From the IMG/VR virus record IMGVR_UViG_3300042473_001265, positions 62,001 through 126,000 of that record: a stretch of DNA of 64,000 nucleotides; one strand, 5' to 3'. A program made the translations under genes and the position numbers. The notes beneath the pieces were generated by a model. That model worked only from the letters and a program-made list of their open reading frames with translations, was not told the origin of the DNA and ran no database searches. Positions 1-59,394 of the stretch are shown piece after piece; position 1 is the stretch's first letter; each line of letters begins with the position of its first letter.

Positions 1-705
1 AGTCAGCGGGCCCATTGCGCTGGAAAGAAGAAGCAAAACGAAAGCGCAGAAATGGAAATGGTGTGTGAAATGTGTGGCCTGTGTGAAACACACGGCGATC
101 ATTCACAGGACAACTTGGATGAAGCATGCTGGGACACACACAAACAAGTTGGTATGAAGAAAAAAAGCAACAAAATGGTTCCCAACTGTGTGCCTAAAAA
201 CGAAGAAAAGGAGACCGCAATGACAGAAAATCAAGATGAATTGGCAAGAATACTGGAACTCAGCACAGGAGTAAGTGCAACAGATCGCGTGGAACTAAAC
301 GAAGAGTTTGATCTAATAGAGTCTATCATTGACAGTCTTGCAGATCGCAATGGGGTAGATGCAGAGACAATATGGGAAGACCTCGACTCACTGACAGATG
401 ATGAGTTGTATGTGTTTGCAGTGACTACGCCAATCATGGAAGATTGGCAAAAGGCCAACAAAAAGGATCGTACTGCCGGCATGAGTCAGAAAGCTGTCAA
501 CGCTTATCGCAGAGAAAATCCCGGGTCCAAACTAAAGACTGCTGTAACTACCAAGCCCAGCAAATTAAAGAAAGGTTCGAAGGCGTCGAAACGTCGTAAG
601 AGCTATTGCAGCCGCAGCCGTGGTCAAATGAAAATGCACAGCATCAGCTGTGCTAAAACTCCGGACAAGGCCATATGCAAAGCACGCCGTAGATGGAACT
701 GCTGA
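1..705 (+). CDS. 5'-truncated modular, basic phage protein, putative virion-internal polyprotein
   Basis: Frame is open from base 1 (SQRAHCAGKKK...) to TGA at 703-705. Short modules joined at x-x-E junctions; Lys/Arg/Cys-rich C-terminal module (KRRKSYCSRS...KARRRWNC). Confidence 0.7.
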   Translation, partial: SQRAHCAGKKKQNESAEMEMVCEMCGLCETHGDHSQDNLDEACWDTHKQVGMKKKSNKMVPNCVPKNEEKETAMTENQDELARILELSTGVSATDRVELNEEFDLIESIIDSLADRNGVDAETIWEDLDSLTDDELYVFAVTTPIMEDWQKANKKDRTAGMSQKAVNAYRRENPGSKLKTAVTTKPSKLKKGSKASKRRKSYCSRSRGQMKMHSISCAKTPDKAICKARRRWNC

Positions 706-706
706 C

Positions 707-994
707 ATGAGACTGTATGAATTTGCATTCGGTTCCGGCGTGGACGTCAATGAAAATCTTCGCGACTGGTTCAAAGATAAATGGGTACGCTTTGGTCCCG
801 ATGGTAAGATACGCGGCGACTGTGCTAGAGGGTCAGAATCTGAAGGCAAGCCCAAGTGTTTGCCACAGTCCAAAGCACATGCACTGGGCAAGAAAGGTCG
901 TGCAAGTGCAGCAGCCAGAAAACGCAGACAAGATCCCGACGCCAATCGTTCAGGCCCAGCAATAAATGTCAGTACAAAAGGAAAGAAAAAATGA
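707..994 (+). CDS. small basic phage protein (MRLYEF...WFKDKWVR module)
   Basis: ATG at 707 directly follows the previous stop; stop overlaps the next ATG (ATGA at 991-994). Confidence 0.7.
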   Translation: MRLYEFAFGSGVDVNENLRDWFKDKWVRFGPDGKIRGDCARGSESEGKPKCLPQSKAHALGKKGRASAAARKRRQDPDANRSGPAINVSTKGKKK

Positions 995-2529
995 ACATAA
1001 ATGATATCATTACAGAATCACAACAAAAATGTCCGCACTGTGGTGGACCTGTGGTGGAATATTCAGAACTAGGCGAGGGCAAAAAAGATGCCTGCTACTA
1101 CAAGGTCAAGGCATCGGCCAAAGTATGGCCCAGTGCCTATGCATCCGGTCGATTAGTTCAGTGTCGCAAAAAAGGTGCTGCCAACTATGGCAACAAGTCA
1201 GAAGGTGTGGCGGAAGGCTTATTAAACGAATTCGCACCAGGTGGAGCTGAAGGTGCTGGACCATATGCATATGGTATAGCTCTAAAAGAAATGGCAAAAT
1301 TGTATGCTGAAGGTGAGTTTGATTTAGTTGACGTCAGCGGCATGGACACAACAAGTCAAAACCAAAGTGATGCCGAAGAAATAAACAGCGTAGCAGATGC
1401 TTTTATCAATCGTGGAATGGAAGCTGGTAGAGAAGCATACCGCATGGTTGACACCATGGTGCAAGAGGACATGGATGAATACCTTGACGGCCAAGGATTC
1501 AATGTTGATGCTGATATCCATGTTGCATACAAAAATGACGTTGACCGTTATAATGCTTCTCCAGAGGGTCAGGCAGGAATCGCTGCGCATGAGGCTCGAC
1601 GAGAAGCCTGGCGGCGGTCAAAGCCGGCCAACCAAGTGATAATACAAGCAATTGATCCCAAAGGCAATTTGCCCATTGACAACACTCGCGTAGTGTTTGA
1701 TGCTAGAGAGTTTAACCTTGAGCCTGGCTTTCTTAAATACTCAATTGAACAAGATATTAAAAAGATCAAAAAGACAGCACCCGGTAGCTTGATTCAAATC
1801 ACCTTGGGCGGCAAACCAACTGATATTCAGGGTATTCTTGACCAATATAAACAGCTCAGCAAGGGGCCACACGATGTGGCGGAAAACTTTGCTGATGGGC
1901 GAAATCCCCAAGACAAGGGCGATGCCAAGCGTCACGGTATCAACACCAAGGCCAGTGTAAGCAGTCTACGCAAAACTGCCAAGCAAGGTGGACGCAAGGG
2001 ACAACTGGCACACTGGCTGGCCAACATGAAATCAGGCCGAGCCAAAAACGAAGGTGTGACAGAAAACACCGAGCCAGAAATGTTGTTCTACGCCAAATTG
2101 CCAGAGGGCACAAAAGTATATGCACGAGTAAAAGATGAACAGCAGTTGGCCAATCTACAACAACAGTATCGCGGCGCTGAAATCAAGACTTTTGATTTTC
2201 AGCGTCCTGATGTGCAGAAATGGCTGGAGGCCCGCAGAATCAATCTACGCAAATTTACACCGGGTATGGTACAAACCATGTATGATGTGATGGAAGCAGC
2301 ACACACCACCAATTTTAACGACGACGACTGGTATGAAATCAATCCTGACACCAAGACCATTGTGAGTCAGCGCGGGCCGCAGGCATATCACATGCCGTTT
2401 GGACAGCGACAGATCACCCTGCCCAATGGCAACATAGTTGTCAGAGGCATGCGAGCCAAAGGCATGGGTCTGGACACCGGACTTGGCAAACCGCAACAGA
2501 AAGAAGACGGTACCTGGGGCGCACTGTAA
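991..2529 (+). CDS. modular phage polyprotein, putative virion-internal protein
   Basis: ATGA-coupled start MNINDIITE. Modules separated by GVAEG, LNEF, VAEN, VTEN and VMEA junctions. Confidence 0.7.
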   Translation: MNINDIITESQQKCPHCGGPVVEYSELGEGKKDACYYKVKASAKVWPSAYASGRLVQCRKKGAANYGNKSEGVAEGLLNEFAPGGAEGAGPYAYGIALKEMAKLYAEGEFDLVDVSGMDTTSQNQSDAEEINSVADAFINRGMEAGREAYRMVDTMVQEDMDEYLDGQGFNVDADIHVAYKNDVDRYNASPEGQAGIAAHEARREAWRRSKPANQVIIQAIDPKGNLPIDNTRVVFDAREFNLEPGFLKYSIEQDIKKIKKTAPGSLIQITLGGKPTDIQGILDQYKQLSKGPHDVAENFADGRNPQDKGDAKRHGINTKASVSSLRKTAKQGGRKGQLAHWLANMKSGRAKNEGVTENTEPEMLFYAKLPEGTKVYARVKDEQQLANLQQQYRGAEIKTFDFQRPDVQKWLEARRINLRKFTPGMVQTMYDVMEAAHTTNFNDDDWYEINPDTKTIVSQRGPQAYHMPFGQRQITLPNGNIVVRGMRAKGMGLDTGLGKPQQKEDGTWGAL

Positions 2530-3054: not shown

Positions 3055-3248
3055 GAGCAGCTGAATTCGTCAAAGAAGACGCCTCCGGAGGCAGCACCAG
3101 TGCTGGCTCCATTGCCCCTGTGGCCATGCCGCTAGGTGGAACGATCACAAGAACTGGTGGCAGTTTCTTTTCTGGTAAATACACAACGGATCCAACACCC
3201 AATACTCCGAGCTATATGAAAAAAGGAAAGAAACGCCGTGCTAACTGA
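3051..3248 (+). CDS. small protein with a capsid-targeting-like N-terminus (MRAAEFVKE)
   Basis: 65-aa ORF translationally coupled on both sides. Confidence 0.6.
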   Translation: MRAAEFVKEDASGGSTSAGSIAPVAMPLGGTITRTGGSFFSGKYTTDPTPNTPSYMKKGKKRRAN

Positions 3249-3678
3249 ACAACTAAAAACCTTGCTTGCAAGCCAATTTGCTTACTATTTAAAAGCTCAA
3301 TACTTTCACTGGAATGTGGAAGGATCAGACTTTGCACAACTACACAAATTCTTTCAAAAAATCTACGAAGATGCCTACAGCGCCGTGGATCCCATAGCCG
3401 AATACATTCGCAGTCTAGATGAATACGTCCCGGGCAGTCTTGCTCGTTATGCTGAATTATCAATCATACAAGATCAAACAAAAGTGCCACGGGCCAAACT
3501 GATGATACAAGAACTGCTGGCCGACAGTGAACCAATGATTGCTCTGTTAAACAGTTGCTTTGCTGAGGCAGAAGCTGAAAACAAACAGGACATTGCCAAC
3601 TTCATGGCTGAACGATTGAGTCAGCAGAACAAATATGCCTGGCAATTGCGCAGTTTCTTAAAGGACGCTAGGGAGTAA
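3238..3678 (+). CDS. dps: Dps / ferritin-like DNA-protection protein
   Basis: Dps signature YFHWNVEG..F..LH.FF..IYE...D.IAE.IR; GTG start. Confidence 0.85.
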   Translation: MLTEQLKTLLASQFAYYLKAQYFHWNVEGSDFAQLHKFFQKIYEDAYSAVDPIAEYIRSLDEYVPGSLARYAELSIIQDQTKVPRAKLMIQELLADSEPMIALLNSCFAEAEAENKQDIANFMAERLSQQNKYAWQLRSFLKDARE

Positions 3679-3679
3679 C

Positions 3680-4378
3680 ATGGACGAAATCTACACTATA
3701 ATGCAACGCCTGGCCTTGATTGAAGGCAGCATTACTCCTGCCAGTGTCAAAACTGGGCTGAATGCTCAACAAAAGTCGGTGCCGCAGATGCCGGCCCTGT
3801 ACAAAATGCCCAGCCAGGGTCCTGTGTTGGGCGGCAACCCCAATAAAAAAGTTCCAGGCAGCAGCTACATGGTCGGCTCAGGTGAAGGTGTAGACAATCC
3901 AGAAGATGTGTTGGAAGAAGAGGTCACCATCGAAGACCGGTTAGACAAAGTTAAAAAATCTTTTGCCGAGTATCTTGACAGTGTTGCTGAGGAAAAACAC
4001 GACACGGACTTGAAAGAAAAAGTCAAGAATGACAGTGACATCAAAGAAAAAAATACCAAAGACTCCAGCATCATAGCCAAACAGATTGTTGCTGTTGCAG
4101 AAAATCCAACAGAAGAAGATCCTGTTGTTCAGATGCCCACTGCCCCGGTTCAAGAACCCATCTACACAGAATCAGCACCGGTCAAGACACTGGCCTTGGA
4201 AGACGGTCGTGTGTGCGAAATACACGGCGACGAGCGTCGTGGATTTGAAATACGACACAACGGCCGTTCAATGAAGAGCCGTTTTAAAAATTTAGACCAA
4301 GCACACATGGCATTGGAAATGTATCTGGGGCGTGACAAAGCAACAGACGAGTCAGCAGATTATATAGAGGAAGCATAA
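3680..4378 (+). CDS. hypothetical acidic phage protein
   Basis: 232-aa ORF tightly packed between its neighbours. Confidence 0.65.
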   Translation: MDEIYTIMQRLALIEGSITPASVKTGLNAQQKSVPQMPALYKMPSQGPVLGGNPNKKVPGSSYMVGSGEGVDNPEDVLEEEVTIEDRLDKVKKSFAEYLDSVAEEKHDTDLKEKVKNDSDIKEKNTKDSSIIAKQIVAVAENPTEEDPVVQMPTAPVQEPIYTESAPVKTLALEDGRVCEIHGDERRGFEIRHNGRSMKSRFKNLDQAHMALEMYLGRDKATDESADYIEEA

Positions 4379-7300
4379 TGATTTTAAATGAGCTGTATAA
4401 ATTAAACGAGTTGAGTCCAGACACCTTGGCCAGTTACAAAAAAGCTGCTGGTGCCGATGCCACTGCTGCTGATGCGGCCGGTGATTATGCTCGTGGCAAC
4501 AAGAGATTCAAGGGCATTGTCAAAGCAACCAAGAAACAGTTTGCCAACGATACCAAAGGTGTGACAGAAAACCGTGAGTACAGTTCAGTGACCAATGCTA
4601 TCACTCGCAGAATCATAACACAACATCCCGAAGTGTTGGCCAAATACGGCCCCGATGTGGTTGGAATGGCCATTGACGAAATTGCAGACTTCGTAGGCGA
4701 TGTTGACGAAATTGGGTCAAGCGATGTTTCGGGCTGGACCAGTCAACTCATTCGTAGTCTGGCTAGATTTCCTCCGCTAAGAGAGCAAGGTGTGGCGGAA
4801 AAGTTAGGCGATAATAGACCCAAACTAGGCAGCGGTCGCGATCGTGGCAAGAGTGTTCGCAAATGGCGCCAGGACCGTGGCCTGGACGAGTCGGGCATGG
4901 CGGGAGGTCATAATAATTCTAAAACAATAATTACTGAGCCAAACAAACGCATACGAATTGACGAATCCTTGCTGTTGCAAGATCCTGTTTATCGCAGTTT
5001 CAAGCAAGTGGGACGCTATCTTGCCGAACGCCGCATGAGCGAAAAAGAAATTCTACAGGTGTTTGCCGACGCAGAAGCAGGAATGACCAACACAGCAACT
5101 GGCACTAATCGTACCATGCTGGGACGCGGCAAAGACAAGGCCACAGATCTTGCAGCCAGTATCAGAGATTCGGTCAACACGGTGTTGAGCGGTGTACAGA
5201 ATTCTGTGCCTGTGTCAGCAGTTGACACTGCTTATGATCAGGCCACTGATGCCCTGGCTGGCCTGGCCGGCGGACAAAAAGGTGCAGTAATGCAGGCGAT
5301 CAAAAAGTATCGCATGCTGGTAAAGAAATATCCCAAGTCTGCTGGATTTGCCAAAGCAGCATTGGTGGCCATTACAGGCCTGGCCACAGGTGGTGCAAGT
5401 CTTCCAGTCATTGCTGGCCTAACCTATGCCCTGGACGCAGCAATCAAAGGCGAAAAACTAAGCAGTGTGTTTGGCAAAGGTGCAGGTGCAGCAGCATTGG
5501 CCTGGGCAGGTCAATCTATTGCTGGTATGTTTGGGGCAGACCCAGCAGCTGGTGCGGCGGCCGCTGGTACCGATCCAGCTGCCGCGGCGTCTACATTTGT
5601 ACCTGGTCCTGACTTGCCTACATACACTGTGCAAGCCGGCGACACACTGAGTCAGATTGCTCAAGCAAACGGTGTATCGGTACAAGAACTAGTTGGGCTA
5701 AATCCACAATTGGCAGCAGACGCTGGCGCAGTAGGTGGCCAGAATCTCAATCCTGATGTGATATTTCCTGGACAAGAAATCACCTTGCCGCCTGCATCAG
5801 GAGCCGACGTTTATGCCGGCGGCGTGGGTACCAATGCCAACACCATGGCCGACATTGCCAAAGGCAATGTGCCTGACAGTTCTATCACACAAACTGGAAG
5901 CCTGGAACGCCTAGGAGGGGTTGACGCTGCTGATGTGAGTCAAGCTGCTGCTGATCCAGGAAAATATTCTGCTCCTATTGATTACAGTCAATCAGGACCA
6001 ACCAGCACTGACTCACTGGGACAAAAATTAGAATACGGCATTCCTGTCAACGACAAGGGTAGTTTTATTCCACCAAACGCTGGTTTGCCCGCTGACGAAC
6101 TGGCCAGACAAACAGCCGCATATGATGCCTGGAAGGCAGACTTTACCAAACGTTTTCCAAGTGCTGAACTACAGCCAGACGGATCTATGAAAGCTACCAA
6201 ACCAGGCCTAGCGCCCATGTATCCATCAAACTACACACCCGGCAGCGGCGGCAGCGGTTCAATAAGACCAAAAGGATTCACAGAATCTGTCAAGTTAATA
6301 AGATTGCCGGTCAGTCAGTTGATTGACAAAAAAACAACCATCTTGAATTGGAAATTGAACGAAAGCATAGGACGCAAGAGCAAAACTGTGAACTTAACCA
6401 CTGCTGGCGCCTACACAGTGTTTGAAAACGTTGACCGATACCGTAAAGCCATCATGGAACTCAAGGGTGTGCCTGGAAGCACACGCCCGGCATTGTATCG
6501 TCCCGACATGGCGGGTGCTCCAGTTGCACCTGCAGCCAAAAAACCCGGCCTGCTGAGCCGTGGGCTCAGCAAAGTAGGTGGTGCACTGAGCACATTTGGT
6601 CGTCAATTTACTACCAACGTGACCAAAGAAAAACTCAAGATGAACTGGCATCAAAAGGGAAAACCCAGTGATTCAGATCAATTGGCTGCTTGGTTGGTCA
6701 CACAAGGCGTGCCACAAGAAGTGGTAACTTCAGTTTACAGTAAAATGGGTCTACCAGTTGCTGCTGCTACAGTAACAGCTACACCAACAGCACCAACAGT
6801 AGCTACGCCAACAGCACCGACAACTGCTACACCAACAGCACCGACAACTGCTACACCAACAACAGCTACCGCCACTACAACCAAGCCAACAGCACCCGCA
6901 GCAGCAGCTGGCAAATTTCCAGGTGAGGATCCACAAGGTGCTGGCTATGTTGGTCGTAGAGAAGTTGCTCGTCGTCAAGCTGCGCGAGCTGCAGGTGCTG
7001 CTAAACCTGCACCTGCCAAGACTCCTAATTTCAGTGGCCCTACTGGATATTCCAGTGTGAATACCACAGTCAAACAACCAGCAAAACAACCAGCTGTGGC
7101 GGAAGGTGCCATGCCAGCGGCAGTGATTCGAATCAAAGAAAAAATTCGTCAAATGTCCGACGCCGAAAAGAAAGAATACTTCCAAGGCAAGACACGAGAG
7201 CAATTGCAACAACTGGCTCGACGACATGGCTACGGCGAAAATAGCAATGTGTACGCCAAGTATGCTGCACAAGGCCTGAATGAATTTGCTCCCGGTTCAG

Positions 7301-8778
7301 GTGGTGGCGACGACGACATCGGCGATGATCCTTACAAGTATCCCACGCCAGAGTCATATCGTCGCAGTGCGGATTACTTTGGTCAATTTGAAGCAGATCA
7401 TTTTGATCGTGAAGACTTTGATGATGCCACTGGCGTGTTCAAAGGCTACTGGGGTGATAAACAGATCGCCTATTTCAAATTTAATAAGCCAACTCAAACT
7501 GGCGGCGACGACCCGGGTCGGGGCTGGTACTATGAACCCCAGTCAGACAGCAGTGACAACACCGGTACTGGACCTGCAGTTGATCGGTCTGATGAACGCA
7601 AGCAACAAGAGTTAGGCATGATCCGTGCGTTTTTAAAATCTGGCAATCGACCAAATCCAGACAGTCAAATTGGTCGATTGATGAAAAAACATGGCATAGA
7701 GGAAGATCTAAGCCGCAGAGGATTCTTACAAGGCTTAGGTGCAGCAGCCGCTGGTGCTGTTGGCGTTGGCGCTGCTGGTTCTGCTCAAGCACGATCAACC
7801 GATGCGTCACGAAAAGAAGATGCTGAGGCCTTGGCATTACTGGCCAAAGGTATGACTCCTGAACAAGTTGCTAAAAAATTAGGAGTTCCTGGACCAAATC
7901 ACGGGCAGACCCATCATATGGGTGGTCGGTGGGCTTCAATCAATCGGGCTGCGGCGCAGCTTCAACGACAACGAGGCGCTGAGATAAAAGAAGGTGTGTC
8001 AGAGTCAGCAGGCGACGAGTTAGAATCCATGTTGAAGTCTGCTGGACTCCCGATCAGGGCCATACATGAGGCTGCTCCTCGCTCCAACCAGATCTGGACA
8101 GGAAATAAGCCAGCAGCTACATTGCCAACAACAACAGCAGCGGCGGCAGCTCCCAAAAAACCTGGATTGCTAACACCAAATAAATCTAAAGAAGCTGCTT
8201 ACGCAGCAGCAAATAAAGCTAAAGCAGCAGCACCTGCGCCAGCAGCAGCAGTACCTGTAGCTGCACCTGTAGCTGCGCCAGCAGCATCTGTGGCTGCAAA
8301 AGAACCAACACCTGATTCACCAACTGCTAGATATAGCGGCAAGACTGGTGAGTTAACTGCTTACGGCGCAGAATTAGCAGCGAAAGAAAAAGCTGATATA
8401 CAAGCTGCCCAAGCAGCAGCAGCAGCAAATAAAGCTAAAGCAGCACCAGCTGCACCTGTAGCTGCGCCAGCAGCACCAACAACGACTGGCATGTTTCAGC
8501 CGCGAACAACTTCACCAGCAACTAATCCAGCAGGTAAGAAAGTAGATATTGTGCAAGCAGCAAACACTGCCATGGCCGCAGGTGGAAATCCAGAAGCCGC
8601 AGCAATAGCTGCAATGAAGGCTAAAAATCCTAAATTAGCTGCAATGATGGCACAGGCAGGATTAGATGATCAAGGTAATGATATTGCAGCAGCACCTGTG
8701 GCGGAAGATTCTCTTGCTGGCATGAAAAGATTAGCGGGCATTGCGTCTGTTAGCCCATACAACAAACTTGTTAACTGA
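4378..8778 (+). CDS. 1466-aa modular protein with a LysM domain, Ala/Pro/Thr-rich linkers and an internal twin-arginine-like segment
   Basis: LysM motif YTVQAGDTLSQIAQANGVSVQELVGLNP...IFPGQEITLP at 5623-5790; hydrophobic Gly/Ala segment at about 5340-5580; many x-x-E junctions. Confidence 0.8.
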   Translation: MILNELYKLNELSPDTLASYKKAAGADATAADAAGDYARGNKRFKGIVKATKKQFANDTKGVTENREYSSVTNAITRRIITQHPEVLAKYGPDVVGMAIDEIADFVGDVDEIGSSDVSGWTSQLIRSLARFPPLREQGVAEKLGDNRPKLGSGRDRGKSVRKWRQDRGLDESGMAGGHNNSKTIITEPNKRIRIDESLLLQDPVYRSFKQVGRYLAERRMSEKEILQVFADAEAGMTNTATGTNRTMLGRGKDKATDLAASIRDSVNTVLSGVQNSVPVSAVDTAYDQATDALAGLAGGQKGAVMQAIKKYRMLVKKYPKSAGFAKAALVAITGLATGGASLPVIAGLTYALDAAIKGEKLSSVFGKGAGAAALAWAGQSIAGMFGADPAAGAAAAGTDPAAAASTFVPGPDLPTYTVQAGDTLSQIAQANGVSVQELVGLNPQLAADAGAVGGQNLNPDVIFPGQEITLPPASGADVYAGGVGTNANTMADIAKGNVPDSSITQTGSLERLGGVDAADVSQAAADPGKYSAPIDYSQSGPTSTDSLGQKLEYGIPVNDKGSFIPPNAGLPADELARQTAAYDAWKADFTKRFPSAELQPDGSMKATKPGLAPMYPSNYTPGSGGSGSIRPKGFTESVKLIRLPVSQLIDKKTTILNWKLNESIGRKSKTVNLTTAGAYTVFENVDRYRKAIMELKGVPGSTRPALYRPDMAGAPVAPAAKKPGLLSRGLSKVGGALSTFGRQFTTNVTKEKLKMNWHQKGKPSDSDQLAAWLVTQGVPQEVVTSVYSKMGLPVAAATVTATPTAPTVATPTAPTTATPTAPTTATPTTATATTTKPTAPAAAAGKFPGEDPQGAGYVGRREVARRQAARAAGAAKPAPAKTPNFSGPTGYSSVNTTVKQPAKQPAVAEGAMPAAVIRIKEKIRQMSDAEKKEYFQGKTREQLQQLARRHGYGENSNVYAKYAAQGLNEFAPGSGGGDDDIGDDPYKYPTPESYRRSADYFGQFEADHFDREDFDDATGVFKGYWGDKQIAYFKFNKPTQTGGDDPGRGWYYEPQSDSSDNTGTGPAVDRSDERKQQELGMIRAFLKSGNRPNPDSQIGRLMKKHGIEEDLSRRGFLQGLGAAAAGAVGVGAAGSAQARSTDASRKEDAEALALLAKGMTPEQVAKKLGVPGPNHGQTHHMGGRWASINRAAAQLQRQRGAEIKEGVSESAGDELESMLKSAGLPIRAIHEAAPRSNQIWTGNKPAATLPTTTAAAAAPKKPGLLTPNKSKEAAYAAANKAKAAAPAPAAAVPVAAPVAAPAASVAAKEPTPDSPTARYSGKTGELTAYGAELAAKEKADIQAAQAAAAANKAKAAPAAPVAAPAAPTTTGMFQPRTTSPATNPAGKKVDIVQAANTAMAAGGNPEAAAIAAMKAKNPKLAAMMAQAGLDDQGNDIAAAPVAEDSLAGMKRLAGIASVSPYNKLVN
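6781..6861 (+). repeat. 24-bp coding tandem repeat (TPTAPTTA), about 3 copies
   Basis: Near-identical units of acaccaacagcaccgacaactgct. Confidence 0.8.
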
Positions 8779-9643: not shown

Positions 9644-12301
9644 TTGAGTTATGTAGACGCACTGTTTGATCGTGAGCACGATCGCATCCATGTTGTAGAA
9701 CGCCAAGGCGGCAAGAGAGTCTACAAAGAATATCCAGCCAACTACATCTTCTACTATGATGATGCCCGTGGCAAGTTCCGCAGCATCTACGACACACCTG
9801 TGTCAAGATTCAGCACACGCAACAACAAAGAATTTCGCAAAGAAGTTCGCATGCACGGCGGCAAGCAGTTGTATGAAAGCGATATCAATCCCATCTTTAG
9901 ATGCTTTGAAGAAAACTACAAAGATGCTGTTGCCCCAGAACTGCAAACGGCCTTTTTTGACATTGAAGTAGACTTTGACAAAGAGCGCGGGTTTTCTCCC
10001 ACTCACGATCCGTTCAATGCCATCACTGCCATTTCTGTTTATTTGAACTGGCTGGATCAGTTGGTCACATTGGCTGTGCCGCCCAAAAGTATCAGCATGG
10101 CTACTGCACAAGAACTGGTTGCTGAATTTGACAACACATTCTTGTTTGACAACGAAGCAGACATGCTGAAAATGTTTCTGGACCTGATTGACGATGCCGA
10201 TGTACTCAGCGGTTGGAATTCAGAGGGCTACGACATTCCCTACACAGTGAATCGTATCACTCGCATACTCAGCAAAGACGACACACGCAAGTTCTGTCTG
10301 TGGGGGCAGTTTCCCAAACCAAGGCAATTTGAACGCTTTGGTGCTGAACAACAAACATACGATCTGATCGGTCGTGTGCATATGGACTATATGCAGTTGT
10401 ATCGCAAATACACATATGAAGAACGACACAGCTACAGCCTGGATGCCATTGCCGAACACGAGTTAGGCGAGCGCAAGACACAGTTTGAAGGCACACTGGA
10501 TCAACTGTACAATCAACACTTCCGAACATTCATTGCCTACAACAGACAAGATACTGCACTGTTGGACAAGCTGGACAAGAAACTACAGTTTTTGGATCTG
10601 GCCAACACACTGGCACATGCCAACACTGTGTTGCTACAGACCACAATGGGTGCAGTTGCTGTGACTGACCAGGCCATTATCAACGAAGCACACGAGCGTG
10701 GCATGGTTGTGCCCAATCGCAAGCAACAGCTCACTGACGACAACACTCAGGCCGCAGGTGCCTATGTGGCATATCCCAAGAAGGGCATGAGTGAATGGAT
10801 TGGTTCGGTTGACATCAACAGCCTGTATCCATCGGCAATTCGTGCCATGAACATGGGTCCAGAAACTGTGATAGGTCAACTGCGACCCATCATGACTGAT
10901 CGTTACATCAAAGACAAAATGAACGGTGGCGCAAGTTTTGCAGCAGCGTGGGAGGGCCTGTTCGGCAGTTTGGAATACACTGCGGTGATGGAACAACAAC
11001 GCGGCACTGAACTCACAGTGGATTGGCAAGATGGCGAGACCAATGTGTATTCAGCGGCTGAGATGTGGTCCATTGTGTTTGATTCAAATCGTCCATGGAT
11101 CTTGACTGCCAACGGAACCATTATCACTTACGAAAAGAAAGGTATCATTCCCGGTCTGCTGGAACGATGGTATAGTGAACGCAAAGAAATGCAGGCCAAG
11201 AAAAAAGATGCCAAAGACAAAAAAGAAGAAGCATTCTGGGACAAGCGGCAACTGGTCAAGAAGATCAACTTGAACAGCTTGTACGGAGCCCTGCTGAATC
11301 CCGGTTGCAGATTCTTTGACCATCGCATTGGTCAGAGTACCACACTGACAGGCCGTGCCATTGCCCGACACATGGATGCTTACATCAATGAATGTATCAC
11401 TGGCAAGTATGATCATACCGGCGATGCTGTGATATACGGCGACACTGATTCATGTTACTTCAGTGCTTGGCCGGCAATCAAGACCGAAGTAGAGCAAGGT
11501 CGCATGGAGTGGAGCAAGGAAACTTGTATTGCTTTGTATGACTCAATTGCAGATCAAGTAAACGATTCATTCCCGGGTTTTATGGAGCAGGCATTCCATT
11601 GTCCGCGAGACATGGGCGGGTTGATCAAAGCCGGCCGCGAGCTGGTGGCAGATCGTGGCCTGTTCATCACAAAGAAACGCTATGCTGTAAACATCATTGA
11701 CCTTGAAGGCAAGCGATTGGACGTCAATGGTGCGCTGGGCAAGACAAAAGTCATGGGGCTTGACCTCAAGCGCAGTGATACACCCAAAGTGATTCAAGAC
11801 TTCTTGTTGGAGATTTTGAATCTTGCGTTGAGTGGAGCACAAAAAGAAAGCATCATTGAACGCATCCGTGAATTCAAATACGAGTTCATGGATCGACCCG
11901 GCTGGGAAAAAGGATCGCCCAAGCGTGTCAACAACTTGACCAAATATGCAGCAGAAGAAACACGCCAAGGCAAAGCCAACATGCCTGGCCATGTCAGAGC
12001 TGCAATGAACTGGAACAATCTGAGACGCATGAACAGTGACAACTATTCAATGCAGATTGTGGATGGTATGAAAACAATTGTGTGCAAACTCAAGAGCAAT
12101 GCACTGGGTTGGACCAGCATTGGCTATCCCACAGACGAACAACGCTTGCCGGAGTGGTTCAAGGAACTGCCGTTTGATGACGGATTGATGGAGGCCACTG
12201 TGGTGGATCAGAAGATTGACAACCTGTTGGGTGTAATGGAGTGGGACTTGCCCAGTGCAACCAACACAGAAAACACATTCCAAAATTTATTTGAATGGTA
12301 A
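9644..12301 (+). CDS. family B DNA polymerase (T4 gp43-like)
   Basis: Exo motifs FFDIEVD and GWNSEGYDIPY; polymerase motifs DINSLYPS, KINLNSLYG and YGDTDS. TTG start with GGAG Shine-Dalgarno at 9633. Confidence 0.97.
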   Translation: MSYVDALFDREHDRIHVVERQGGKRVYKEYPANYIFYYDDARGKFRSIYDTPVSRFSTRNNKEFRKEVRMHGGKQLYESDINPIFRCFEENYKDAVAPELQTAFFDIEVDFDKERGFSPTHDPFNAITAISVYLNWLDQLVTLAVPPKSISMATAQELVAEFDNTFLFDNEADMLKMFLDLIDDADVLSGWNSEGYDIPYTVNRITRILSKDDTRKFCLWGQFPKPRQFERFGAEQQTYDLIGRVHMDYMQLYRKYTYEERHSYSLDAIAEHELGERKTQFEGTLDQLYNQHFRTFIAYNRQDTALLDKLDKKLQFLDLANTLAHANTVLLQTTMGAVAVTDQAIINEAHERGMVVPNRKQQLTDDNTQAAGAYVAYPKKGMSEWIGSVDINSLYPSAIRAMNMGPETVIGQLRPIMTDRYIKDKMNGGASFAAAWEGLFGSLEYTAVMEQQRGTELTVDWQDGETNVYSAAEMWSIVFDSNRPWILTANGTIITYEKKGIIPGLLERWYSERKEMQAKKKDAKDKKEEAFWDKRQLVKKINLNSLYGALLNPGCRFFDHRIGQSTTLTGRAIARHMDAYINECITGKYDHTGDAVIYGDTDSCYFSAWPAIKTEVEQGRMEWSKETCIALYDSIADQVNDSFPGFMEQAFHCPRDMGGLIKAGRELVADRGLFITKKRYAVNIIDLEGKRLDVNGALGKTKVMGLDLKRSDTPKVIQDFLLEILNLALSGAQKESIIERIREFKYEFMDRPGWEKGSPKRVNNLTKYAAEETRQGKANMPGHVRAAMNWNNLRRMNSDNYSMQIVDGMKTIVCKLKSNALGWTSIGYPTDEQRLPEWFKELPFDDGLMEATVVDQKIDNLLGVMEWDLPSATNTENTFQNLFEW

Positions 12302-23095: not shown

Positions 23096-25309
23096 ATGAC
23101 CAAAGTATTGAAATTTTTTGCAATTGCCGTGATGGCAATGACCATGGGGCTGGCAGTAGCAGCTGATGTAGTTCGCTATGCGTATATCACTGCCATGGTA
23201 AAACAACCCAATGGCACGGTGATTAACCAACAATGGAAATACACCTACATCAACAACAAGCTTCGAGCCAAGGACCTAATCAGTGCCACAACAGTTGGCG
23301 CCGTGGCATCTGTTGCGCGGCCTGTAACCCCAACTGTGACTCCAGCGGTGACTCCAGCGGTGATCCCAACTGTGCCCAGGCTAGTGTTTGATGCCAATTT
23401 CAACGCGGCCACCTACTACAACAACCCCAACATGGGCACGCCTACAGCAGTGCCCAGTTTTGACCCCAGCTGGTATTTGACCAGTGAGGCTGGCAAAACA
23501 ATCTCAGCCACGGGTGCCAACTATGCCTATGCTCGTGGCTGGACTGGCAAGGGCTCGACCATTATGGTGATGGACACTGGCATTGCTGTGGCTGGCAGTG
23601 AGTTTGCTGGAAAAATCAAATACAGCGTGGACTACACACAGACCAGCATATTGGACACAGTGGGTCACGGCAGCCAGGTGGCAGCCATTGCGGCCGCTGC
23701 TCGTGACGGCAAAGGCATGCATGGTGTGGCCTACGATGCCAATCTGGCCATTGCCAAGATTGGCACGGGTAATAGCGTCAGCATGGCATCAGCTCGTCAA
23801 GCACTGGTGTGGGCACAGCAGTACACAGACATTGTGGTGGCTAACTTGAGTTCCAATGTGAACTATGCCGCTGACTACACCAGATCTGTTTACAGGTTGG
23901 CTGACGGTACTTTTTACAGCAACCATGTCAACTACGGTGGCACCAACTACTACAACTTGGAACGACCAACTGATTGGTCTGCGGTGTTGGGCAAGCAAAT
24001 GGTGCTGGTTGTGGCCGCAGGCAATCAAGGCCTAGGCTATGTGCAGTCGCCTGCGGTGTTTGCGTCTGCTGTGGGCCGAGACGGCCGACTAGTGATGAAT
24101 GGGCAGATGATTATTGCAGGTGGCTGGAACACCACCACCAACTCAGTGGAGGGCAACGGTGCAGGACACATTTGCAAAGTGTCAGTGAATCAGGTGTGTC
24201 AAGACAGTTATCGCACCAAAGACTTCTTCTTGATGGCGCCCAGTGTGGCCATTGAAACTGTGGGTGCAGACGGTGCATATCGAACCAGCAGCGGCACCAG
24301 TTTTGCTGCACCTGCCATATCTGGTGCAGTGGCTGTGGTTCATCAGTTGTGGCCCTACATGAAGGGTGATCAGCTGGCTCAGCTGCTGTTTAAAACTGCC
24401 AATAAAAACATAAAAAACTACAACGCAGATCAAATGGGCCATGGGCTGTTGGATCTCAACAGGGCCACACAGCCAGTGGGGTCGCTGGGCGTTTCAGTCA
24501 CAGGTCGAACAGGCACAGCGCGGCCACTCAGCGGCGGTTTGGCCATTGCTGGTGTGATGGATGCATCAGTGTCCAGCATGCTGTCGGCTGTGTCGGCTGT
24601 TGACAGCTTTGAACGAGACTTCACAGTGAACCTGTCATCTGCTGCTGGCAGCACTGTGCAGCCTGTGGAACACATGCAGCAGACTGCGGGACAAAGTTGG
24701 AGCAGTAAATTTGCAGGTCCTTCAGTCACAGCCCGAGGTGTGACCATCAGTGGCACGGGTGCCAACATCAGTGTGGGAGTCAGCAGCCAAGCATTTGATC
24801 TTCATCGGCAAGCCTTGCAGTATCAAGCCACAGTCACACAAGTGGCACACAATCCTTGGGTCAACTTCTCTGGCATGTGGGGACAAAGTGCAGGCTCCAC
24901 CACTGCTGAATTCAGCATGTTGTACAGCCCAGACGCTTCGGGTGCATGGGCACAGGCAGGTGTTATGAACACTGCGGGCCAATACCAGTACGCCATGGTC
25001 AATCGCGTGTCTGACATTCGCAGTGCCTATGCTGTAGCAGGGTGGAGGAACAACAGTGTGAACTTGTATGCTGGCTTCAAGCCTACTGTGACCAGTGGCT
25101 CAGTCAACTTGACAGTTCCCACCAGTGTTGATGCTGATGGAGTCATGCACTACAGCAACGCAACCAATCAGATCCGTAACCAACGCACTGGTTTTGTTGG
25201 CGCCAGTGTTGACTATGCACCTGTGCGCAATCACAGCCTAAATTTATCAACAACATATGGCCAAGATGGCACAGGCCAAATTGGTTTGAAATACAAGATT
25301 GCTTTATAA
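23096..25309 (+). CDS. secreted S8 (subtilisin-like) peptidase with a C-terminal beta-rich, autotransporter-like domain
   Basis: Signal peptide; catalytic triad motifs MDTG, GHGSQVA and GTSFAAP; beta-strand-rich C-terminus. Confidence 0.85.
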   Translation: MTKVLKFFAIAVMAMTMGLAVAADVVRYAYITAMVKQPNGTVINQQWKYTYINNKLRAKDLISATTVGAVASVARPVTPTVTPAVTPAVIPTVPRLVFDANFNAATYYNNPNMGTPTAVPSFDPSWYLTSEAGKTISATGANYAYARGWTGKGSTIMVMDTGIAVAGSEFAGKIKYSVDYTQTSILDTVGHGSQVAAIAAAARDGKGMHGVAYDANLAIAKIGTGNSVSMASARQALVWAQQYTDIVVANLSSNVNYAADYTRSVYRLADGTFYSNHVNYGGTNYYNLERPTDWSAVLGKQMVLVVAAGNQGLGYVQSPAVFASAVGRDGRLVMNGQMIIAGGWNTTTNSVEGNGAGHICKVSVNQVCQDSYRTKDFFLMAPSVAIETVGADGAYRTSSGTSFAAPAISGAVAVVHQLWPYMKGDQLAQLLFKTANKNIKNYNADQMGHGLLDLNRATQPVGSLGVSVTGRTGTARPLSGGLAIAGVMDASVSSMLSAVSAVDSFERDFTVNLSSAAGSTVQPVEHMQQTAGQSWSSKFAGPSVTARGVTISGTGANISVGVSSQAFDLHRQALQYQATVTQVAHNPWVNFSGMWGQSAGSTTAEFSMLYSPDASGAWAQAGVMNTAGQYQYAMVNRVSDIRSAYAVAGWRNNSVNLYAGFKPTVTSGSVNLTVPTSVDADGVMHYSNATNQIRNQRTGFVGASVDYAPVRNHSLNLSTTYGQDGTGQIGLKYKIAL

Positions 25310-52445: not shown

Positions 52446-53767
52446 TAGAGTTACTGTATCTATTACCAATCATACTGCTTGGCATAGCCAGCGGCATTGT
52501 GATCGGCGTATTTCCCGGAGTAGGACCTGCATCAGGAATAATGATCTTGTATCCTGTTTTGCTCGGGTTGCCGGTGGTGGATTTGTTTGTATTTTATTCA
52601 GTGATGATGTCTTCAGTGCAGTACTACAGCAGCATACCATCTATTGTGTATGGCATAGCCGGAGAAATCACCAGTGTGCCAGCGGTGCAGTATGGCCATG
52701 ATGAATTCAGGCAAGGGCGTGGTGCAGAACTACTAAGCGCCACGGCCACATCCAGTCTGATAGCATCGGTTGTGGGTGTTGTGATTTTTTATGCAGCCAC
52801 ACAGTACATTGATTTTATGAAGTACTTTATCAACAACACTCCAAGATTGATATTGTTAACTGTGCTTGTTGTGTTGATCAGTGTGGCCAGCAAACAAAAG
52901 ATCCTGGCACTGACATTTGCAATTATAGGACTGACGATTGGACACATTGGGTACGATGTTTTGAGGCGCGAACATTTTTTATCCGCAGCAGATTTTCTGC
53001 CCAGTGGCATTCCGTTTGTACCGGTGTTCATTGGATTTCTAATGTTGCCAGAGTTATTTCATCATGCAAGGCATACCTTATCCGGTGTTGACATCAATTC
53101 GAATGAGTTTGGTATTCGTACTCGGCTAGCAAATTTATTAAAATTTCCACCGGTGCTGTCATCCCTGCGTGGATCCGTGATAGGTGCTGTGATGGGCCTG
53201 GTGCCTATGATAGGAACATCTGTGTCGTCAATGGTTGCAGCAGTGGTGGAAAAAAAGATCAACAACAACAATCAACGAATAGTGGTTTCTGCAGAGGCTG
53301 CCAACAATTCAGCTGCCATCACTGTGTTGATACCATTGATATTTCTAGCATTGCCTATTATTCCATCCGAAGCAGTGATCATGGCCTTGGCCGAACGCAG
53401 CGGATTTGGAATCAACAACAGTTTCAATTTGATAGCATCACTGGCTGGACCATTGATTGTGATACTGTTACTGGTCAATGTGGTCAATTGGTTGGTTGCC
53501 GGAATGTTTTATCAAAGTATGATTTCCCTCTACATTCGGTTGAACAAGATAATTTATCCCATCCTGATTGCAGTAAGCGTGGCAGTGTGTGTTTCAGAAG
53601 GAATGGCCAACCACCAACTGGGTCTGTATCTGTTGTTGACTGCCATGTCGGTATGTGTTGGGGTTTTTGTCAAAGAGTTTTCTGTTCGCGTCGCACTGAT
53701 ATTTGGCATGCTTTTGTCAACGTCAGTATCATCGGAAATTTTCCGATTTGTATTATTCAACTTTTAA
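52442..53767 (+). CDS. TctA-like tripartite tricarboxylate transporter membrane subunit
   Basis: About 12 TM segments; GVFPGVGP, GEITSVPA and AEAANNSAA..LIPLIFLALP motifs. Confidence 0.8.
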   Translation: MIELLYLLPIILLGIASGIVIGVFPGVGPASGIMILYPVLLGLPVVDLFVFYSVMMSSVQYYSSIPSIVYGIAGEITSVPAVQYGHDEFRQGRGAELLSATATSSLIASVVGVVIFYAATQYIDFMKYFINNTPRLILLTVLVVLISVASKQKILALTFAIIGLTIGHIGYDVLRREHFLSAADFLPSGIPFVPVFIGFLMLPELFHHARHTLSGVDINSNEFGIRTRLANLLKFPPVLSSLRGSVIGAVMGLVPMIGTSVSSMVAAVVEKKINNNNQRIVVSAEAANNSAAITVLIPLIFLALPIIPSEAVIMALAERSGFGINNSFNLIASLAGPLIVILLLVNVVNWLVAGMFYQSMISLYIRLNKIIYPILIAVSVAVCVSEGMANHQLGLYLLLTAMSVCVGVFVKEFSVRVALIFGMLLSTSVSSEIFRFVLFNF

Positions 53768-58056: not shown

Positions 58057-58116
58057 GCGTTTGACCATTAATTCAATTTGTGCTATAATATACACATAAC
58101 GCAACAAAGGAACACC

Positions 58117-59394
58117 ATGAGCAAAGCAGGTACCACAGCAGACAGCAAAGACAGCGACAAGTTCAAAGATCTTGTTGGCCCAACTGACCCTAAAATTGAT
58201 CGTGAAGTTCGTGAGATTTTGATCACTGCACGGGTCGGACTGTTGCTGAAGGCCAGTTTCTTTGGCAACATGGCAACTCGCCTTACACTGGTCAACGCTG
58301 ACAAGTGGTGCCCTACTGCCGCAACAGACGGTCGTAATTTCTATTACAACAGCCGTTTTATCAAAATGCTTCGACCCAAAGAAGTTGAATTCTTGTTTGG
58401 CCACGAAGTGTTGCATTGTGTATATGATCACTTCGGCCGTAGAGGCGACAGAGATCCACAGTTATGGAACATTGCTGACGACTACTGTGTCAACGGCGAC
58501 TTGAAAAAACACAATGTTGGCGAGTTCATTACCAGTGTACCTTGCCTGTACGACAAAAAATACGAAGGCATGAGTGCCGAAGAAGTGTACGACATCCTGT
58601 ACCAAAACGCAGACAAGATTGACATTGGTTCATTGCTGGACAAAATGATCGACCAGCACTTGGATGGTGAAGGCGATGGCGATGGCGACGGCAAAGATGG
58701 CAATGGTCGTCCCAAGCTCAGCGAAGAAGACCGTCGGCAAATCAAAGACGAAATCAAAGAAGCCATGTTGTCTGCTGTGGCAGCAGATGCTGATGGTGCT
58801 GGCAATTTGCCCGCAGGTGTACAGCGTATTATTCGTGATCTCACTGAGCCGCAGATGAACTGGCGCGAACTGTTGCGTATGCAATTGGAGAGCACTATCA
58901 AAAGTGACTACACCTGGATGCGAGCAAGCCGTAAAGGCTGGCACATGGATGCAGTGATGCCGGGCATGAAACTGGATCCCATGATTGATATTGCACTGTT
59001 TATTGACGCTTCGGGTTCCATGGGTGAGGACATGCTCAAAGACATCCTGAGCGAAACAGCCGGCATCATGGAATCGTTCCCTGCATATCGTATCCATGTT
59101 GCAAGTTTTGATACCGAAGTGTACAATCCACAGCAATACAATTCAGAAAATTTAGAAGACATCACTGAATACCAGATCAAGGGCGGTGGAGGCACAGACT
59201 TTGATTGTGTGTTTGACTACCTGAAAGAGAACGACATTGAACCCAAGCGACTGGTGGTGTTCACAGACGGTTACCCTTACGGTAGCTGGGGTGATGAGAA
59301 CTATGCAGACACTGTGTGGATCTTGCATGGTACCACAACTATTGTGCCACCTTGGGGACAGCATGCCTACTATGATGAGGAGAAAAAGAAATGA
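58117..59394 (+). CDS. VWA-like / putative metallopeptidase (DUF2201-type) partner of MoxR
   Basis: HEVLH (HExxH) motif, MIDAS-like IDASGSM, GGGGTDF and VFTDGY. Confidence 0.85.
   Translation: MSKAGTTADSKDSDKFKDLVGPTDPKIDREVREILITARVGLLLKASFFGNMATRLTLVNADKWCPTAATDGRNFYYNSRFIKMLRPKEVEFLFGHEVLHCVYDHFGRRGDRDPQLWNIADDYCVNGDLKKHNVGEFITSVPCLYDKKYEGMSAEEVYDILYQNADKIDIGSLLDKMIDQHLDGEGDGDGDGKDGNGRPKLSEEDRRQIKDEIKEAMLSAVAADADGAGNLPAGVQRIIRDLTEPQMNWRELLRMQLESTIKSDYTWMRASRKGWHMDAVMPGMKLDPMIDIALFIDASGSMGEDMLKDILSETAGIMESFPAYRIHVASFDTEVYNPQQYNSENLEDITEYQIKGGGGTDFDCVFDYLKENDIEPKRLVVFTDGYPYGSWGDENYADTVWILHGTTTIVPPWGQHAYYDEEKKK

Follow-up and report, generated by a model that had tools for sequence, protein, structure and literature searches.

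How can a twin-arginine translocation (Tat) signal serve a protein when it lies about 1110 residues from the start of the chain? The question arises from P0002, a mosaic polyprotein encoded in bases 62001-126000 of the 340,172-bp IMG/VR record IMGVR_UViG_3300042473_001265 (completeness estimate 98%). These 64,000 nucleotides (nt) are the window, in which positions below are numbered unless a locus or contig is named. In a preliminary description of this DNA, an S-R-R-x-F-L motif, a hydrophobic stretch and an AQA peptidase site were reported ~1110 residues into the protein, and it was proposed that a cut after ...I-E-E makes the signal N-terminal. Translation of positions 7699-7990 (+), with no alternative genetic code required, gave exactly the reported peptide, in frame within the open reading frame (ORF) 4378..8778, which confirmed the motif and its place. 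In the primary product the signal stands at residue 1110 of 1466, and it would be N-terminal only after the predicted cut at E1109. The Tat motif is beyond chance, and it is conserved and portable between cargoes. We propose that P0002 is probably a capsid-targeted, junction-cut polyprotein, whose 1110-1209 fragment would be ejected into the next host, exported by the Tat system and trimmed after A-Q-A. The part of the gene in question is organized as follows (aa, amino acids).

4378..8778 (+), P0002 gene, mosaic polyprotein of 1466 aa (ORF; relatives in metagenomes and viral loci)
7276..7704 (+), widespread conserved module, aa 967-1109, with the end ...L-M-K-K-H-G-I-E-E (alignment A1)
7693..7704 (+), junction G-I-E-E, aa 1106-1109, predicted prohead-protease site, cut after E1109 (module boundary; motif enrichment)
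7705..7791 (+), twin-arginine signal peptide, D1110-A1138 (TIGR01409; alignment of 17 sequences; genome scan)
7792..8004 (+), P0002 cargo, R1139-E1209, a ~70-aa three-helix domain that ends at the junction G-V-S-E, nt 7993-8004 (alignment A3; AF2)

The internal twin-arginine signal

The signal is composed of a three-residue n-region (D-L-S), R-R-G-F-L-Q, 18 uncharged Ala/Gly/Val residues and A-Q-A (aa 1136-1138). The twin arginines are aa 1113-1114 (nt 7714-7719, codons CGC AGA), and the Tat consensus S/T-R-R-x-F-L-K is matched by S-R-R-G-F-L-Q at aa 1112-1118. The best 12-residue Kyte-Doolittle mean of the h-region was 1.65. When the fragment was scanned alone, it scored 23.6 bits with NCBIfam TIGR01409, above the cut-off of 16.7. 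A six-frame TIGR01409 scan of the whole genome indicated two places, of which the P0002 site (22.7 bits) was the sole one over the cut-off; the second, weaker one lay in the neighbouring giant protein. In a six-frame regular-expression scan of the 340 kb genome, the P0002 signal was the only instance inside a real ORF, and a lenient pattern (twin-Arg plus 14 uncharged residues) appeared in 11 of 20,000 shuffles of the Ala-rich P0002.

Relatives of P0002 were collected by a word search, which gave ~45 metagenomic proteins, and from viral loci (n=66). All 45 metagenomic relatives are mosaics with common blocks in differing order and with Zeta-toxin, cytidylyltransferase, GP88 or DUF6321 domains. 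Since only three relatives came up when long proteins were word-searched with the Tat module as query, we ran an exhaustive HMMER search of 1.84e9 proteins, which returned 29 matches; ~20 cluster representatives retain the signal, in all cases internally or after a short propeptide. In the alignment of 17 sequences (36%-85% identity to the first one), R-R-G-F-L-x-G-x-G and Q-A were invariant, and position +5 was K, R or Q. Mean pairwise identity amounted to 74% in the signal, 56% in the cargo and ~24% in the flanks, and the Arg codons varied synonymously between loci. The upstream modules differ among the relatives, and in every case a [VILM]-x-E junction precedes the first Arg by 2-4 residues; per position, a junction at a distance of 2-3 residues has a probability of 0.036 by chance. 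Across all family proteins and the 66 viral loci, this type of signal is found in front of nine cargo groups that are unrelated to one another. Neither the HMMER search nor 185,579 prokaryote genomes yielded a stand-alone bacterial relative.

These observations bear on other possible origins of the segment, namely a vestigial signal left by the capture of a host gene, mere chance, or a separate nested gene that begins at the ATG at nt 7682. P0002 is Ala/Gly-rich, so that hydrophobic runs are frequent in it, and a Met lies 11 residues upstream of the signal. However, the motif is more strongly conserved than the cargo behind it and shifts from one cargo to another, and both the shuffle count and the lack of a stand-alone relative in the above searches speak against a vestige or a chance motif, which makes such origins extremely improbable. 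The internal start at nt 7682 was rejected as well: no Shine-Dalgarno sequence precedes it, promoters on the + strand did not exceed chance, and the Met belongs to the conserved upstream module. The upstream M-K-K-H-G-I-E-E is neither an n-region nor a start, as the preceding module closes with it at its conserved C-terminus. This module, aa 967-1109, is the commonest block of the family; its alignment A1 comprises 25 sequences with 36 invariant columns, including the invariant F-E-A-D-H-F-D and I-A-Y-F-K-F motifs. The block closes with ...L-M-K-K-H-G-[ILM]-x-E in ~40 proteins, and the alignments stop at aa 1109, followed by unrelated sequence, which assigns the Met to the preceding module. 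The module is represented at 66 viral loci, and it was found neither in cultured phages nor in the 185,579 prokaryote genomes.

The statement in the preliminary description that Tat signals function at N-termini is too strict if read as N-termini only, because in dual Sec-Tat membrane proteins they also function from an internal position (PMC5449189, PMC3471235). The P0002 signal could therefore work internally and uncleaved in the same style, as in actinobacterial Rieske-type proteins (PMC3471235, PMC5449189), or it could act as a decoy and keep TatBC occupied or jammed; if such a decoy bound its receptor, the signal would likewise be conserved above the cargo. Nevertheless, the strict spacing of 2-4 aa after the junction would then be needless, the cargoes are many and different, some of them clearly periplasmic domain types, and the A-x-A processing site is conserved. 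Use of the signal in place, or as a decoy, is for these reasons very unlikely, and nothing favours the jamming of the translocon suggested earlier over export.

Junctions, propeptides and the prohead protease

The blocks of the family are joined by the short motif G-[VILM]-[ATS]-E. The tetrapeptide GVAE was counted 81 times in 53,437 family residues, where ~1-2 occurrences are expected. In T4, gp21 cuts after Glu in L/I-x-E (PMC9026906). A [VILMF]-x-E motif ending at aa 5-14 was present in 41/60 distinct family N-termini (background 0.196; binomial p 3e-16; the family statistics count related sequences). The typical starts, M-L-L-T-N-L-F-E, M-K-I-T-D-I-I-T-E and M-R-A-I-E-F-I-S-E, resemble the T4 capsid targeting sequence (CTS), MKTYQEFIAE (PMC8442874), and P0002 has a start of this kind.

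4378..4410 (+), CTS-like N-terminal propeptide M-I-L-N-E-L-Y-K-L-N-E, aa 1-11, with two L-N-E sites

The same order is found in miniature in P0072, a complete small gene of 88 aa, in which the propeptide M-R-A-I-E-F-I-S-E is followed by a Tat signal and then by a small cargo. The phage genome encodes a Peptidase_S77 protein (T4 gp21-type prohead protease, 84.9 bits, at 197398-198045 of the genome) as well as a major capsid protein of the Gp23 type (328 bits), both ~130 kb from the Tat signal, and Peptidase_S77 is present also on a related 235 kb contig.

We then compared the hydrophobic segments of the family with respect to the junctions. Of 32 distinct segments, 24 begin <=12 aa after a junction (background 0.20; p 4e-11). 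The junction-proximal segments comprise 12 of the twin-Arg type, ~10 that are Sec-like (Lys/Arg, stronger core, A-x-A) and 2-3 with a lipobox. Tat h-regions are less hydrophobic than Sec h-regions, and the family values follow this rule, with 1.66 for the twin-Arg type versus 2.03 for the Sec-like type (p 1.5e-4). Because Sec- and lipoprotein-like segments also directly follow [VILM]-x-E junctions, the latent-signal design is not confined to Tat. Such segments were noted in P0006 (aa 355-385), P0013 (aa 1255-1285), P0018 (aa 405-440), P0020 (aa 408-440), P0045 (aa 688-720) and the L022:7041 ORF (aa 50-85). No Pfam domains were found in eight Sec-like or lipobox cargoes.

The signal might be real and unmasked but act in the producing cell, where Tat would export the fragment towards the end of the ongoing infection. 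In this case, either the fragment leaves the prohead after maturation cleavage or another protease cuts P0002 in the cytoplasm. Candidates for the second protease are the phage subtilase, encoded at 23096-25309, and a zincin domain in the adjacent polyvalent protein, as zincins of the SprT-like and M48 types are also encoded by the phage. The fragment is only ~100 aa, and in T4 the cleaved core peptides and propeptides mostly exit the head (PMC9026906). On the other hand, the prohead protease is suggested by the CTS-like propeptides and by junctions of the L/I-x-E type. Internal proteins of T4 that are about as large remain in the head and are then ejected, and the other proteases have no known Glu specificity. 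We regard action in the producing cell as unlikely.

Cargoes and the proposed route to the host envelope

The P0002 cargo alone was modelled by AF2 as three helices (pLDDT 72.6), whereas the model of signal plus cargo was of low confidence (pLDDT 58). The short helix-turn-helix (HTH)-like segment mentioned in the preliminary description could not be established: HTH_23 scored 21.7 bits on the cargo, below the Pfam cut-off of 24.6, and a Foldseek search of the cargo model against the PDB gave nothing significant (best E 1.7, TM <0.5; the weak rows were mostly HTH proteins). In the ESM Atlas there was no usable match for the cargo. Signal-less copies of the same domain (P0064-P0071, e.g. P0065 aa 330-398) stand directly after a junction, with [IL]-[SP]-E followed by R-V-T-P-E-W. 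Their first residue is the one that would be exposed in P0002 by a cut between A-Q-A and R-A-T-P-E-W; both proposed cut sites thus mark the same domain boundary. As judged from these sequences, the cargo domain is apparently deployed both with and without an export signal.

Two of the other cargoes are envelope or periplasm domain types (TonB/TolA-C and Peptidase_M48). The module at L046:7846-8470 (+) has a Tat-like signal after S-L-E-E, then a TonB_2/TolA C-terminal domain (E 4.9e-18), and ends with Q-G-V-A-E. This domain type works in the periplasm, and the L046 module may imitate TonB or TolA there after delivery by the phage. In L019, junctions separate a Tat module from a Zeta-toxin module. 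The target of Zeta toxin is cytoplasmic, and such a separation is as expected if the pieces of one polyprotein go to different compartments.

P0002 has a further hydrophobic part, which precedes LysM. This is the only domain that Pfam recognised in the protein, as HTH_23 at aa 1149-1171 stayed under its threshold.

5356..5538 (+), two hydrophobic membrane-helix-like segments, aa 327-352 and aa 368-387, upstream of LysM, with no junction before them
5623..5790 (+), LysM peptidoglycan-binding domain, aa 416-471 (Pfam PF01476, E 5.9e-11, 42.6 bits, above the cut-off)

The hydrophobic segments of the family could be membrane-insertion or anchor elements of ejection proteins that form or seal a trans-envelope conduit, independently of Tat, with the Arg pair reflecting the positive-inside rule. 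The two membrane-helix-like segments and LysM of P0002 would fit this role, as would some junction-proximal segments in relatives, which are long double helices (L021). However, an anchor would account poorly for the invariant full R-R-G-F-L-[KRQ]-G, for the conserved A-x-A, for the weakly hydrophobic, Tat-typical h-region that passed TIGR01409, and for the end of the segment after A-Q-A, which is the domain start of the signal-less copies. We find an anchor function rather improbable.

The proposal that a cut after ...I-E-E makes the Tat signal N-terminal finds strong comparative support as far as the architecture is concerned, from the motif and its profile score, the conservation of the signal, its portability over nine cargoes, its fixed place 2-4 aa after junctions, the protease gene, the CTS-like propeptides and P0072. 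The physiological part, that is packaging, cleavage, injection, Tat transport and signal-peptidase trimming, we infer from the T4 precedent (PMC9026906) and from what the relatives have in common. In the route that we favour, the CTS-like propeptide would bring the polyprotein into the prohead core, where the gp21-type prohead protease would cut the [G]-[VILM]-x-E junctions. With cleavage behind E1109, the twin-arginine signal would become the new N-terminus of a fragment of 100 aa (aa 1110-1209). The fragments would be ejected with the DNA into the cytoplasm of the next host, as T4 internal proteins are, and the host TatBC would recognise and export the fragment aa 1110-1209. Signal peptidase I would then trim it after A-Q-A and free the ~70-aa helical domain into the periplasm. 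The address would thus be bipartite, the capsid first and the host envelope second. It is also conceivable, at not quite even chances, that P0002 represents a whole class of phage-injected "pre-secretory" effectors, i.e. prohead-protease fragments with latent Tat, Sec or lipoprotein signals.

Several points weigh against this route. The Pfam profile PF10518 (TAT_signal) scored 18.0 bits, below its cut-off of 22.7, and the commonest junction has Val at P3, versus Leu or Ile in T4 sites. The family p-values are optimistic because of the relatedness of the counted sequences. The cargo looks weakly HTH-like, and it is not intrinsically periplasmic, as signal-less copies of it exist. The host Tat system is an assumption, and no phage-encoded TatA or TatC was found in the phage genome. 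Finally, megablast and tblastn with whole P0002, aa 960-1215 and P0050 indicated no relatives in cultured phages.

A role in the cytoplasm or as a conduit is what is commonly assigned to proteins that enter the cell together with phage DNA. If the proposed route is true, export signals unmasked by the capsid protease would constitute a second routing step for ejected proteins. With a whole class of such effectors, a TonB/TolA-C mimic, the M48 peptidase, LysM pieces and the small helical domain could be placed in the periplasm and membranes of the next host moments after DNA entry, by the host's own translocases and before any phage gene expression. Such immediate access to the envelope may serve superinfection exclusion, interference with receptors or with TonB/Tol, or wall repair. 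For the annotation of large "hypothetical" proteins of jumbo phages, the idea also provides rules: a CTS-like start, junctions of the form G-[VILM]-x-E, and signals that follow such junctions.

Known systems and the genomic neighbourhood

Capsid-targeted, protease-processed phage proteins are already known, and the latent host export signals predicted in P0002 and its relatives would be new; here sequence comparison supports the architecture, and the physiology is the proposed part. The closest likeness is to T4 IPI-III and Alt, which, like P0002, have a short N-terminal propeptide ending in L/I-x-E, and the phage has both the gp21-type protease and Gp23. T4 internal proteins are packaged and then ejected into the host cytoplasm (PMC9026906, PMC8442874). 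Unlike them, P0002 is a multi-module chain of 1466 aa with repeated internal junctions (in the family mostly G-V-A-E), and the P0002 family has predicted host export signals at the start of some of the modules that would be released, which are not described for T4 internal proteins. In the giant phages phiKZ and SPN3US, the prohead protease recognises a short motif in numerous head proteins and cleaves them behind its Glu, and the products then pass into the host cell (PMC9026906, PMC7411985); their motif is, however, S/A/G-x-E, and no latent export signals were reported for them in the literature retrieved.

Polyvalent proteins (Iyer et al. 2017, PMC5512222) are very large mosaics of unrelated effector domains with predicted delivery together with the DNA. 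In the P0002 family the effector domains include nucleotidyltransferase, zincin peptidases, amidoligase, Zeta toxin and GP88, whereas in P0002 itself, although it is clearly a mosaic, LysM alone was recognised. For polyvalent proteins, autoproteolysis by embedded metallopeptidases was proposed in PMC5512222, the text of which does not refer to signal peptides, transmembrane segments, the periplasm or twin-arginine. The P0002 family differs in that its junctions fit the prohead protease and its modules carry Tat, Sec or lipoprotein signals.

Compared to bacterial Tat signals (TIGR01409/PF10518), the P0002 signal is alike in the consensus, in the weakly hydrophobic Ala/Gly-rich h-region and in A-x-A. 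It is unlike them in its position at residue 1110, in the n-region of only three residues that the cut would leave, and in having Gln for Lys (K/R in relatives). Bipartite presequences of the thylakoid lumen (PMC10267391, PMC2171186) are serial addresses as well, in which a processing protease takes off the first part (the transit peptide) and thereby exposes a Tat or Sec signal for a second membrane. If the proposed route is true, the phage system would be a prokaryotic counterpart of these organelle presequences, by analogy and not by homology: the thylakoid case is that of a eukaryotic organelle, whereas here the first address would be the phage capsid and the second translocase that of the next host. 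A literature search for twin-arginine together with prohead protease or ejection proteins gave nothing relevant (most subscription journals were outside its coverage), and signal peptides in such proteins were not mentioned in the papers on polyvalent proteins and jumbo phages.

The source is an uncultured T4-related jumbo phage with a genome G+C content of 44.6%. Its family-B DNA polymerase, encoded at 9644-12301, is nearest to those of two T4-related jumbo phages, Sinorhizobium phage Phosso (49% aa identity) and Agrobacterium phage Atu_ph07 (46%). In the cultured relative Phosso (PV764938.1 258268-258735 (-) = L075:1769-2236), one small protein carries a Tat signal in the usual N-terminal position (TIGR01409, 19.3 bits); there was no match in Atu_ph07. 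No paralogues of the P0002 modules were found elsewhere in the phage genome, and no relatives among the 185,579 prokaryote genomes. Within P0002, we also noticed a short Thr/Pro/Ala-rich tandem repeat (aa 797-845, 6766-6912 (+)) and a long Ala/Pro-rich tail of low complexity (aa ~1254-1440, 8137-8700 (+)).

The region around P0002 looks like a cluster of capsid-targeted proteins, with a further modular protein upstream.

991..2529 (+), neighbouring modular protein with the CTS-like start M-N-I-N-D-I-I-T-E and the junctions G-V-A-E and G-V-T-E (PHROG matches to modular families)

A gene at 1-705 (+), which starts 80 nt before the window, has the CTS-like start M-K-T-K-E-F-T-T-E and a DUF6321 domain at its end. 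Directly upstream of the polyprotein cluster there is a ferritin/Dps-like gene (3238-3678 (+), PF00210, E 4.7e-22), and a ferritin-like gene (L071:3-365) also precedes the small CTS-plus-Tat gene P0072 on another contig. As the same ferritin-like gene precedes both the P0002 cluster and P0072, the neighbourhood is conserved. A second giant modular protein, P0048 (1447 aa; G000:C1:56241-60584 (+) = L004:1242-5585), ends 1416 nt before the window start. It contains NTP_transf_2, SprT-like, Peptidase_M48 and Amidoligase_2 domains, a set that corresponds to the repertoire of polyvalent proteins (PMC5512222). In P0048, a lipobox-type signal directly follows G-L-E-E (aa ~397-420; G-L-E-E and then G-I-R-D-K-L-A-T-A-A-L-A-A-C), and a weaker twin-Arg segment follows L-S-E (aa ~545-571) at the head of the Peptidase_M48 module.

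Three other genes of the window were noted in passing. The subtilase (Peptidase_S8) domain (E 3.2e-25) lies in a 737-aa protein encoded on the + strand at 23096-25309. An unusual auxiliary gene at 52442-53767 (+) encodes a membrane subunit of a TctA-family tripartite tricarboxylate transporter (PF01970, E 4.1e-50), and a protein with a DUF2201_N putative metallopeptidase domain and a VWA-like domain is encoded at 58078-59394 (+).

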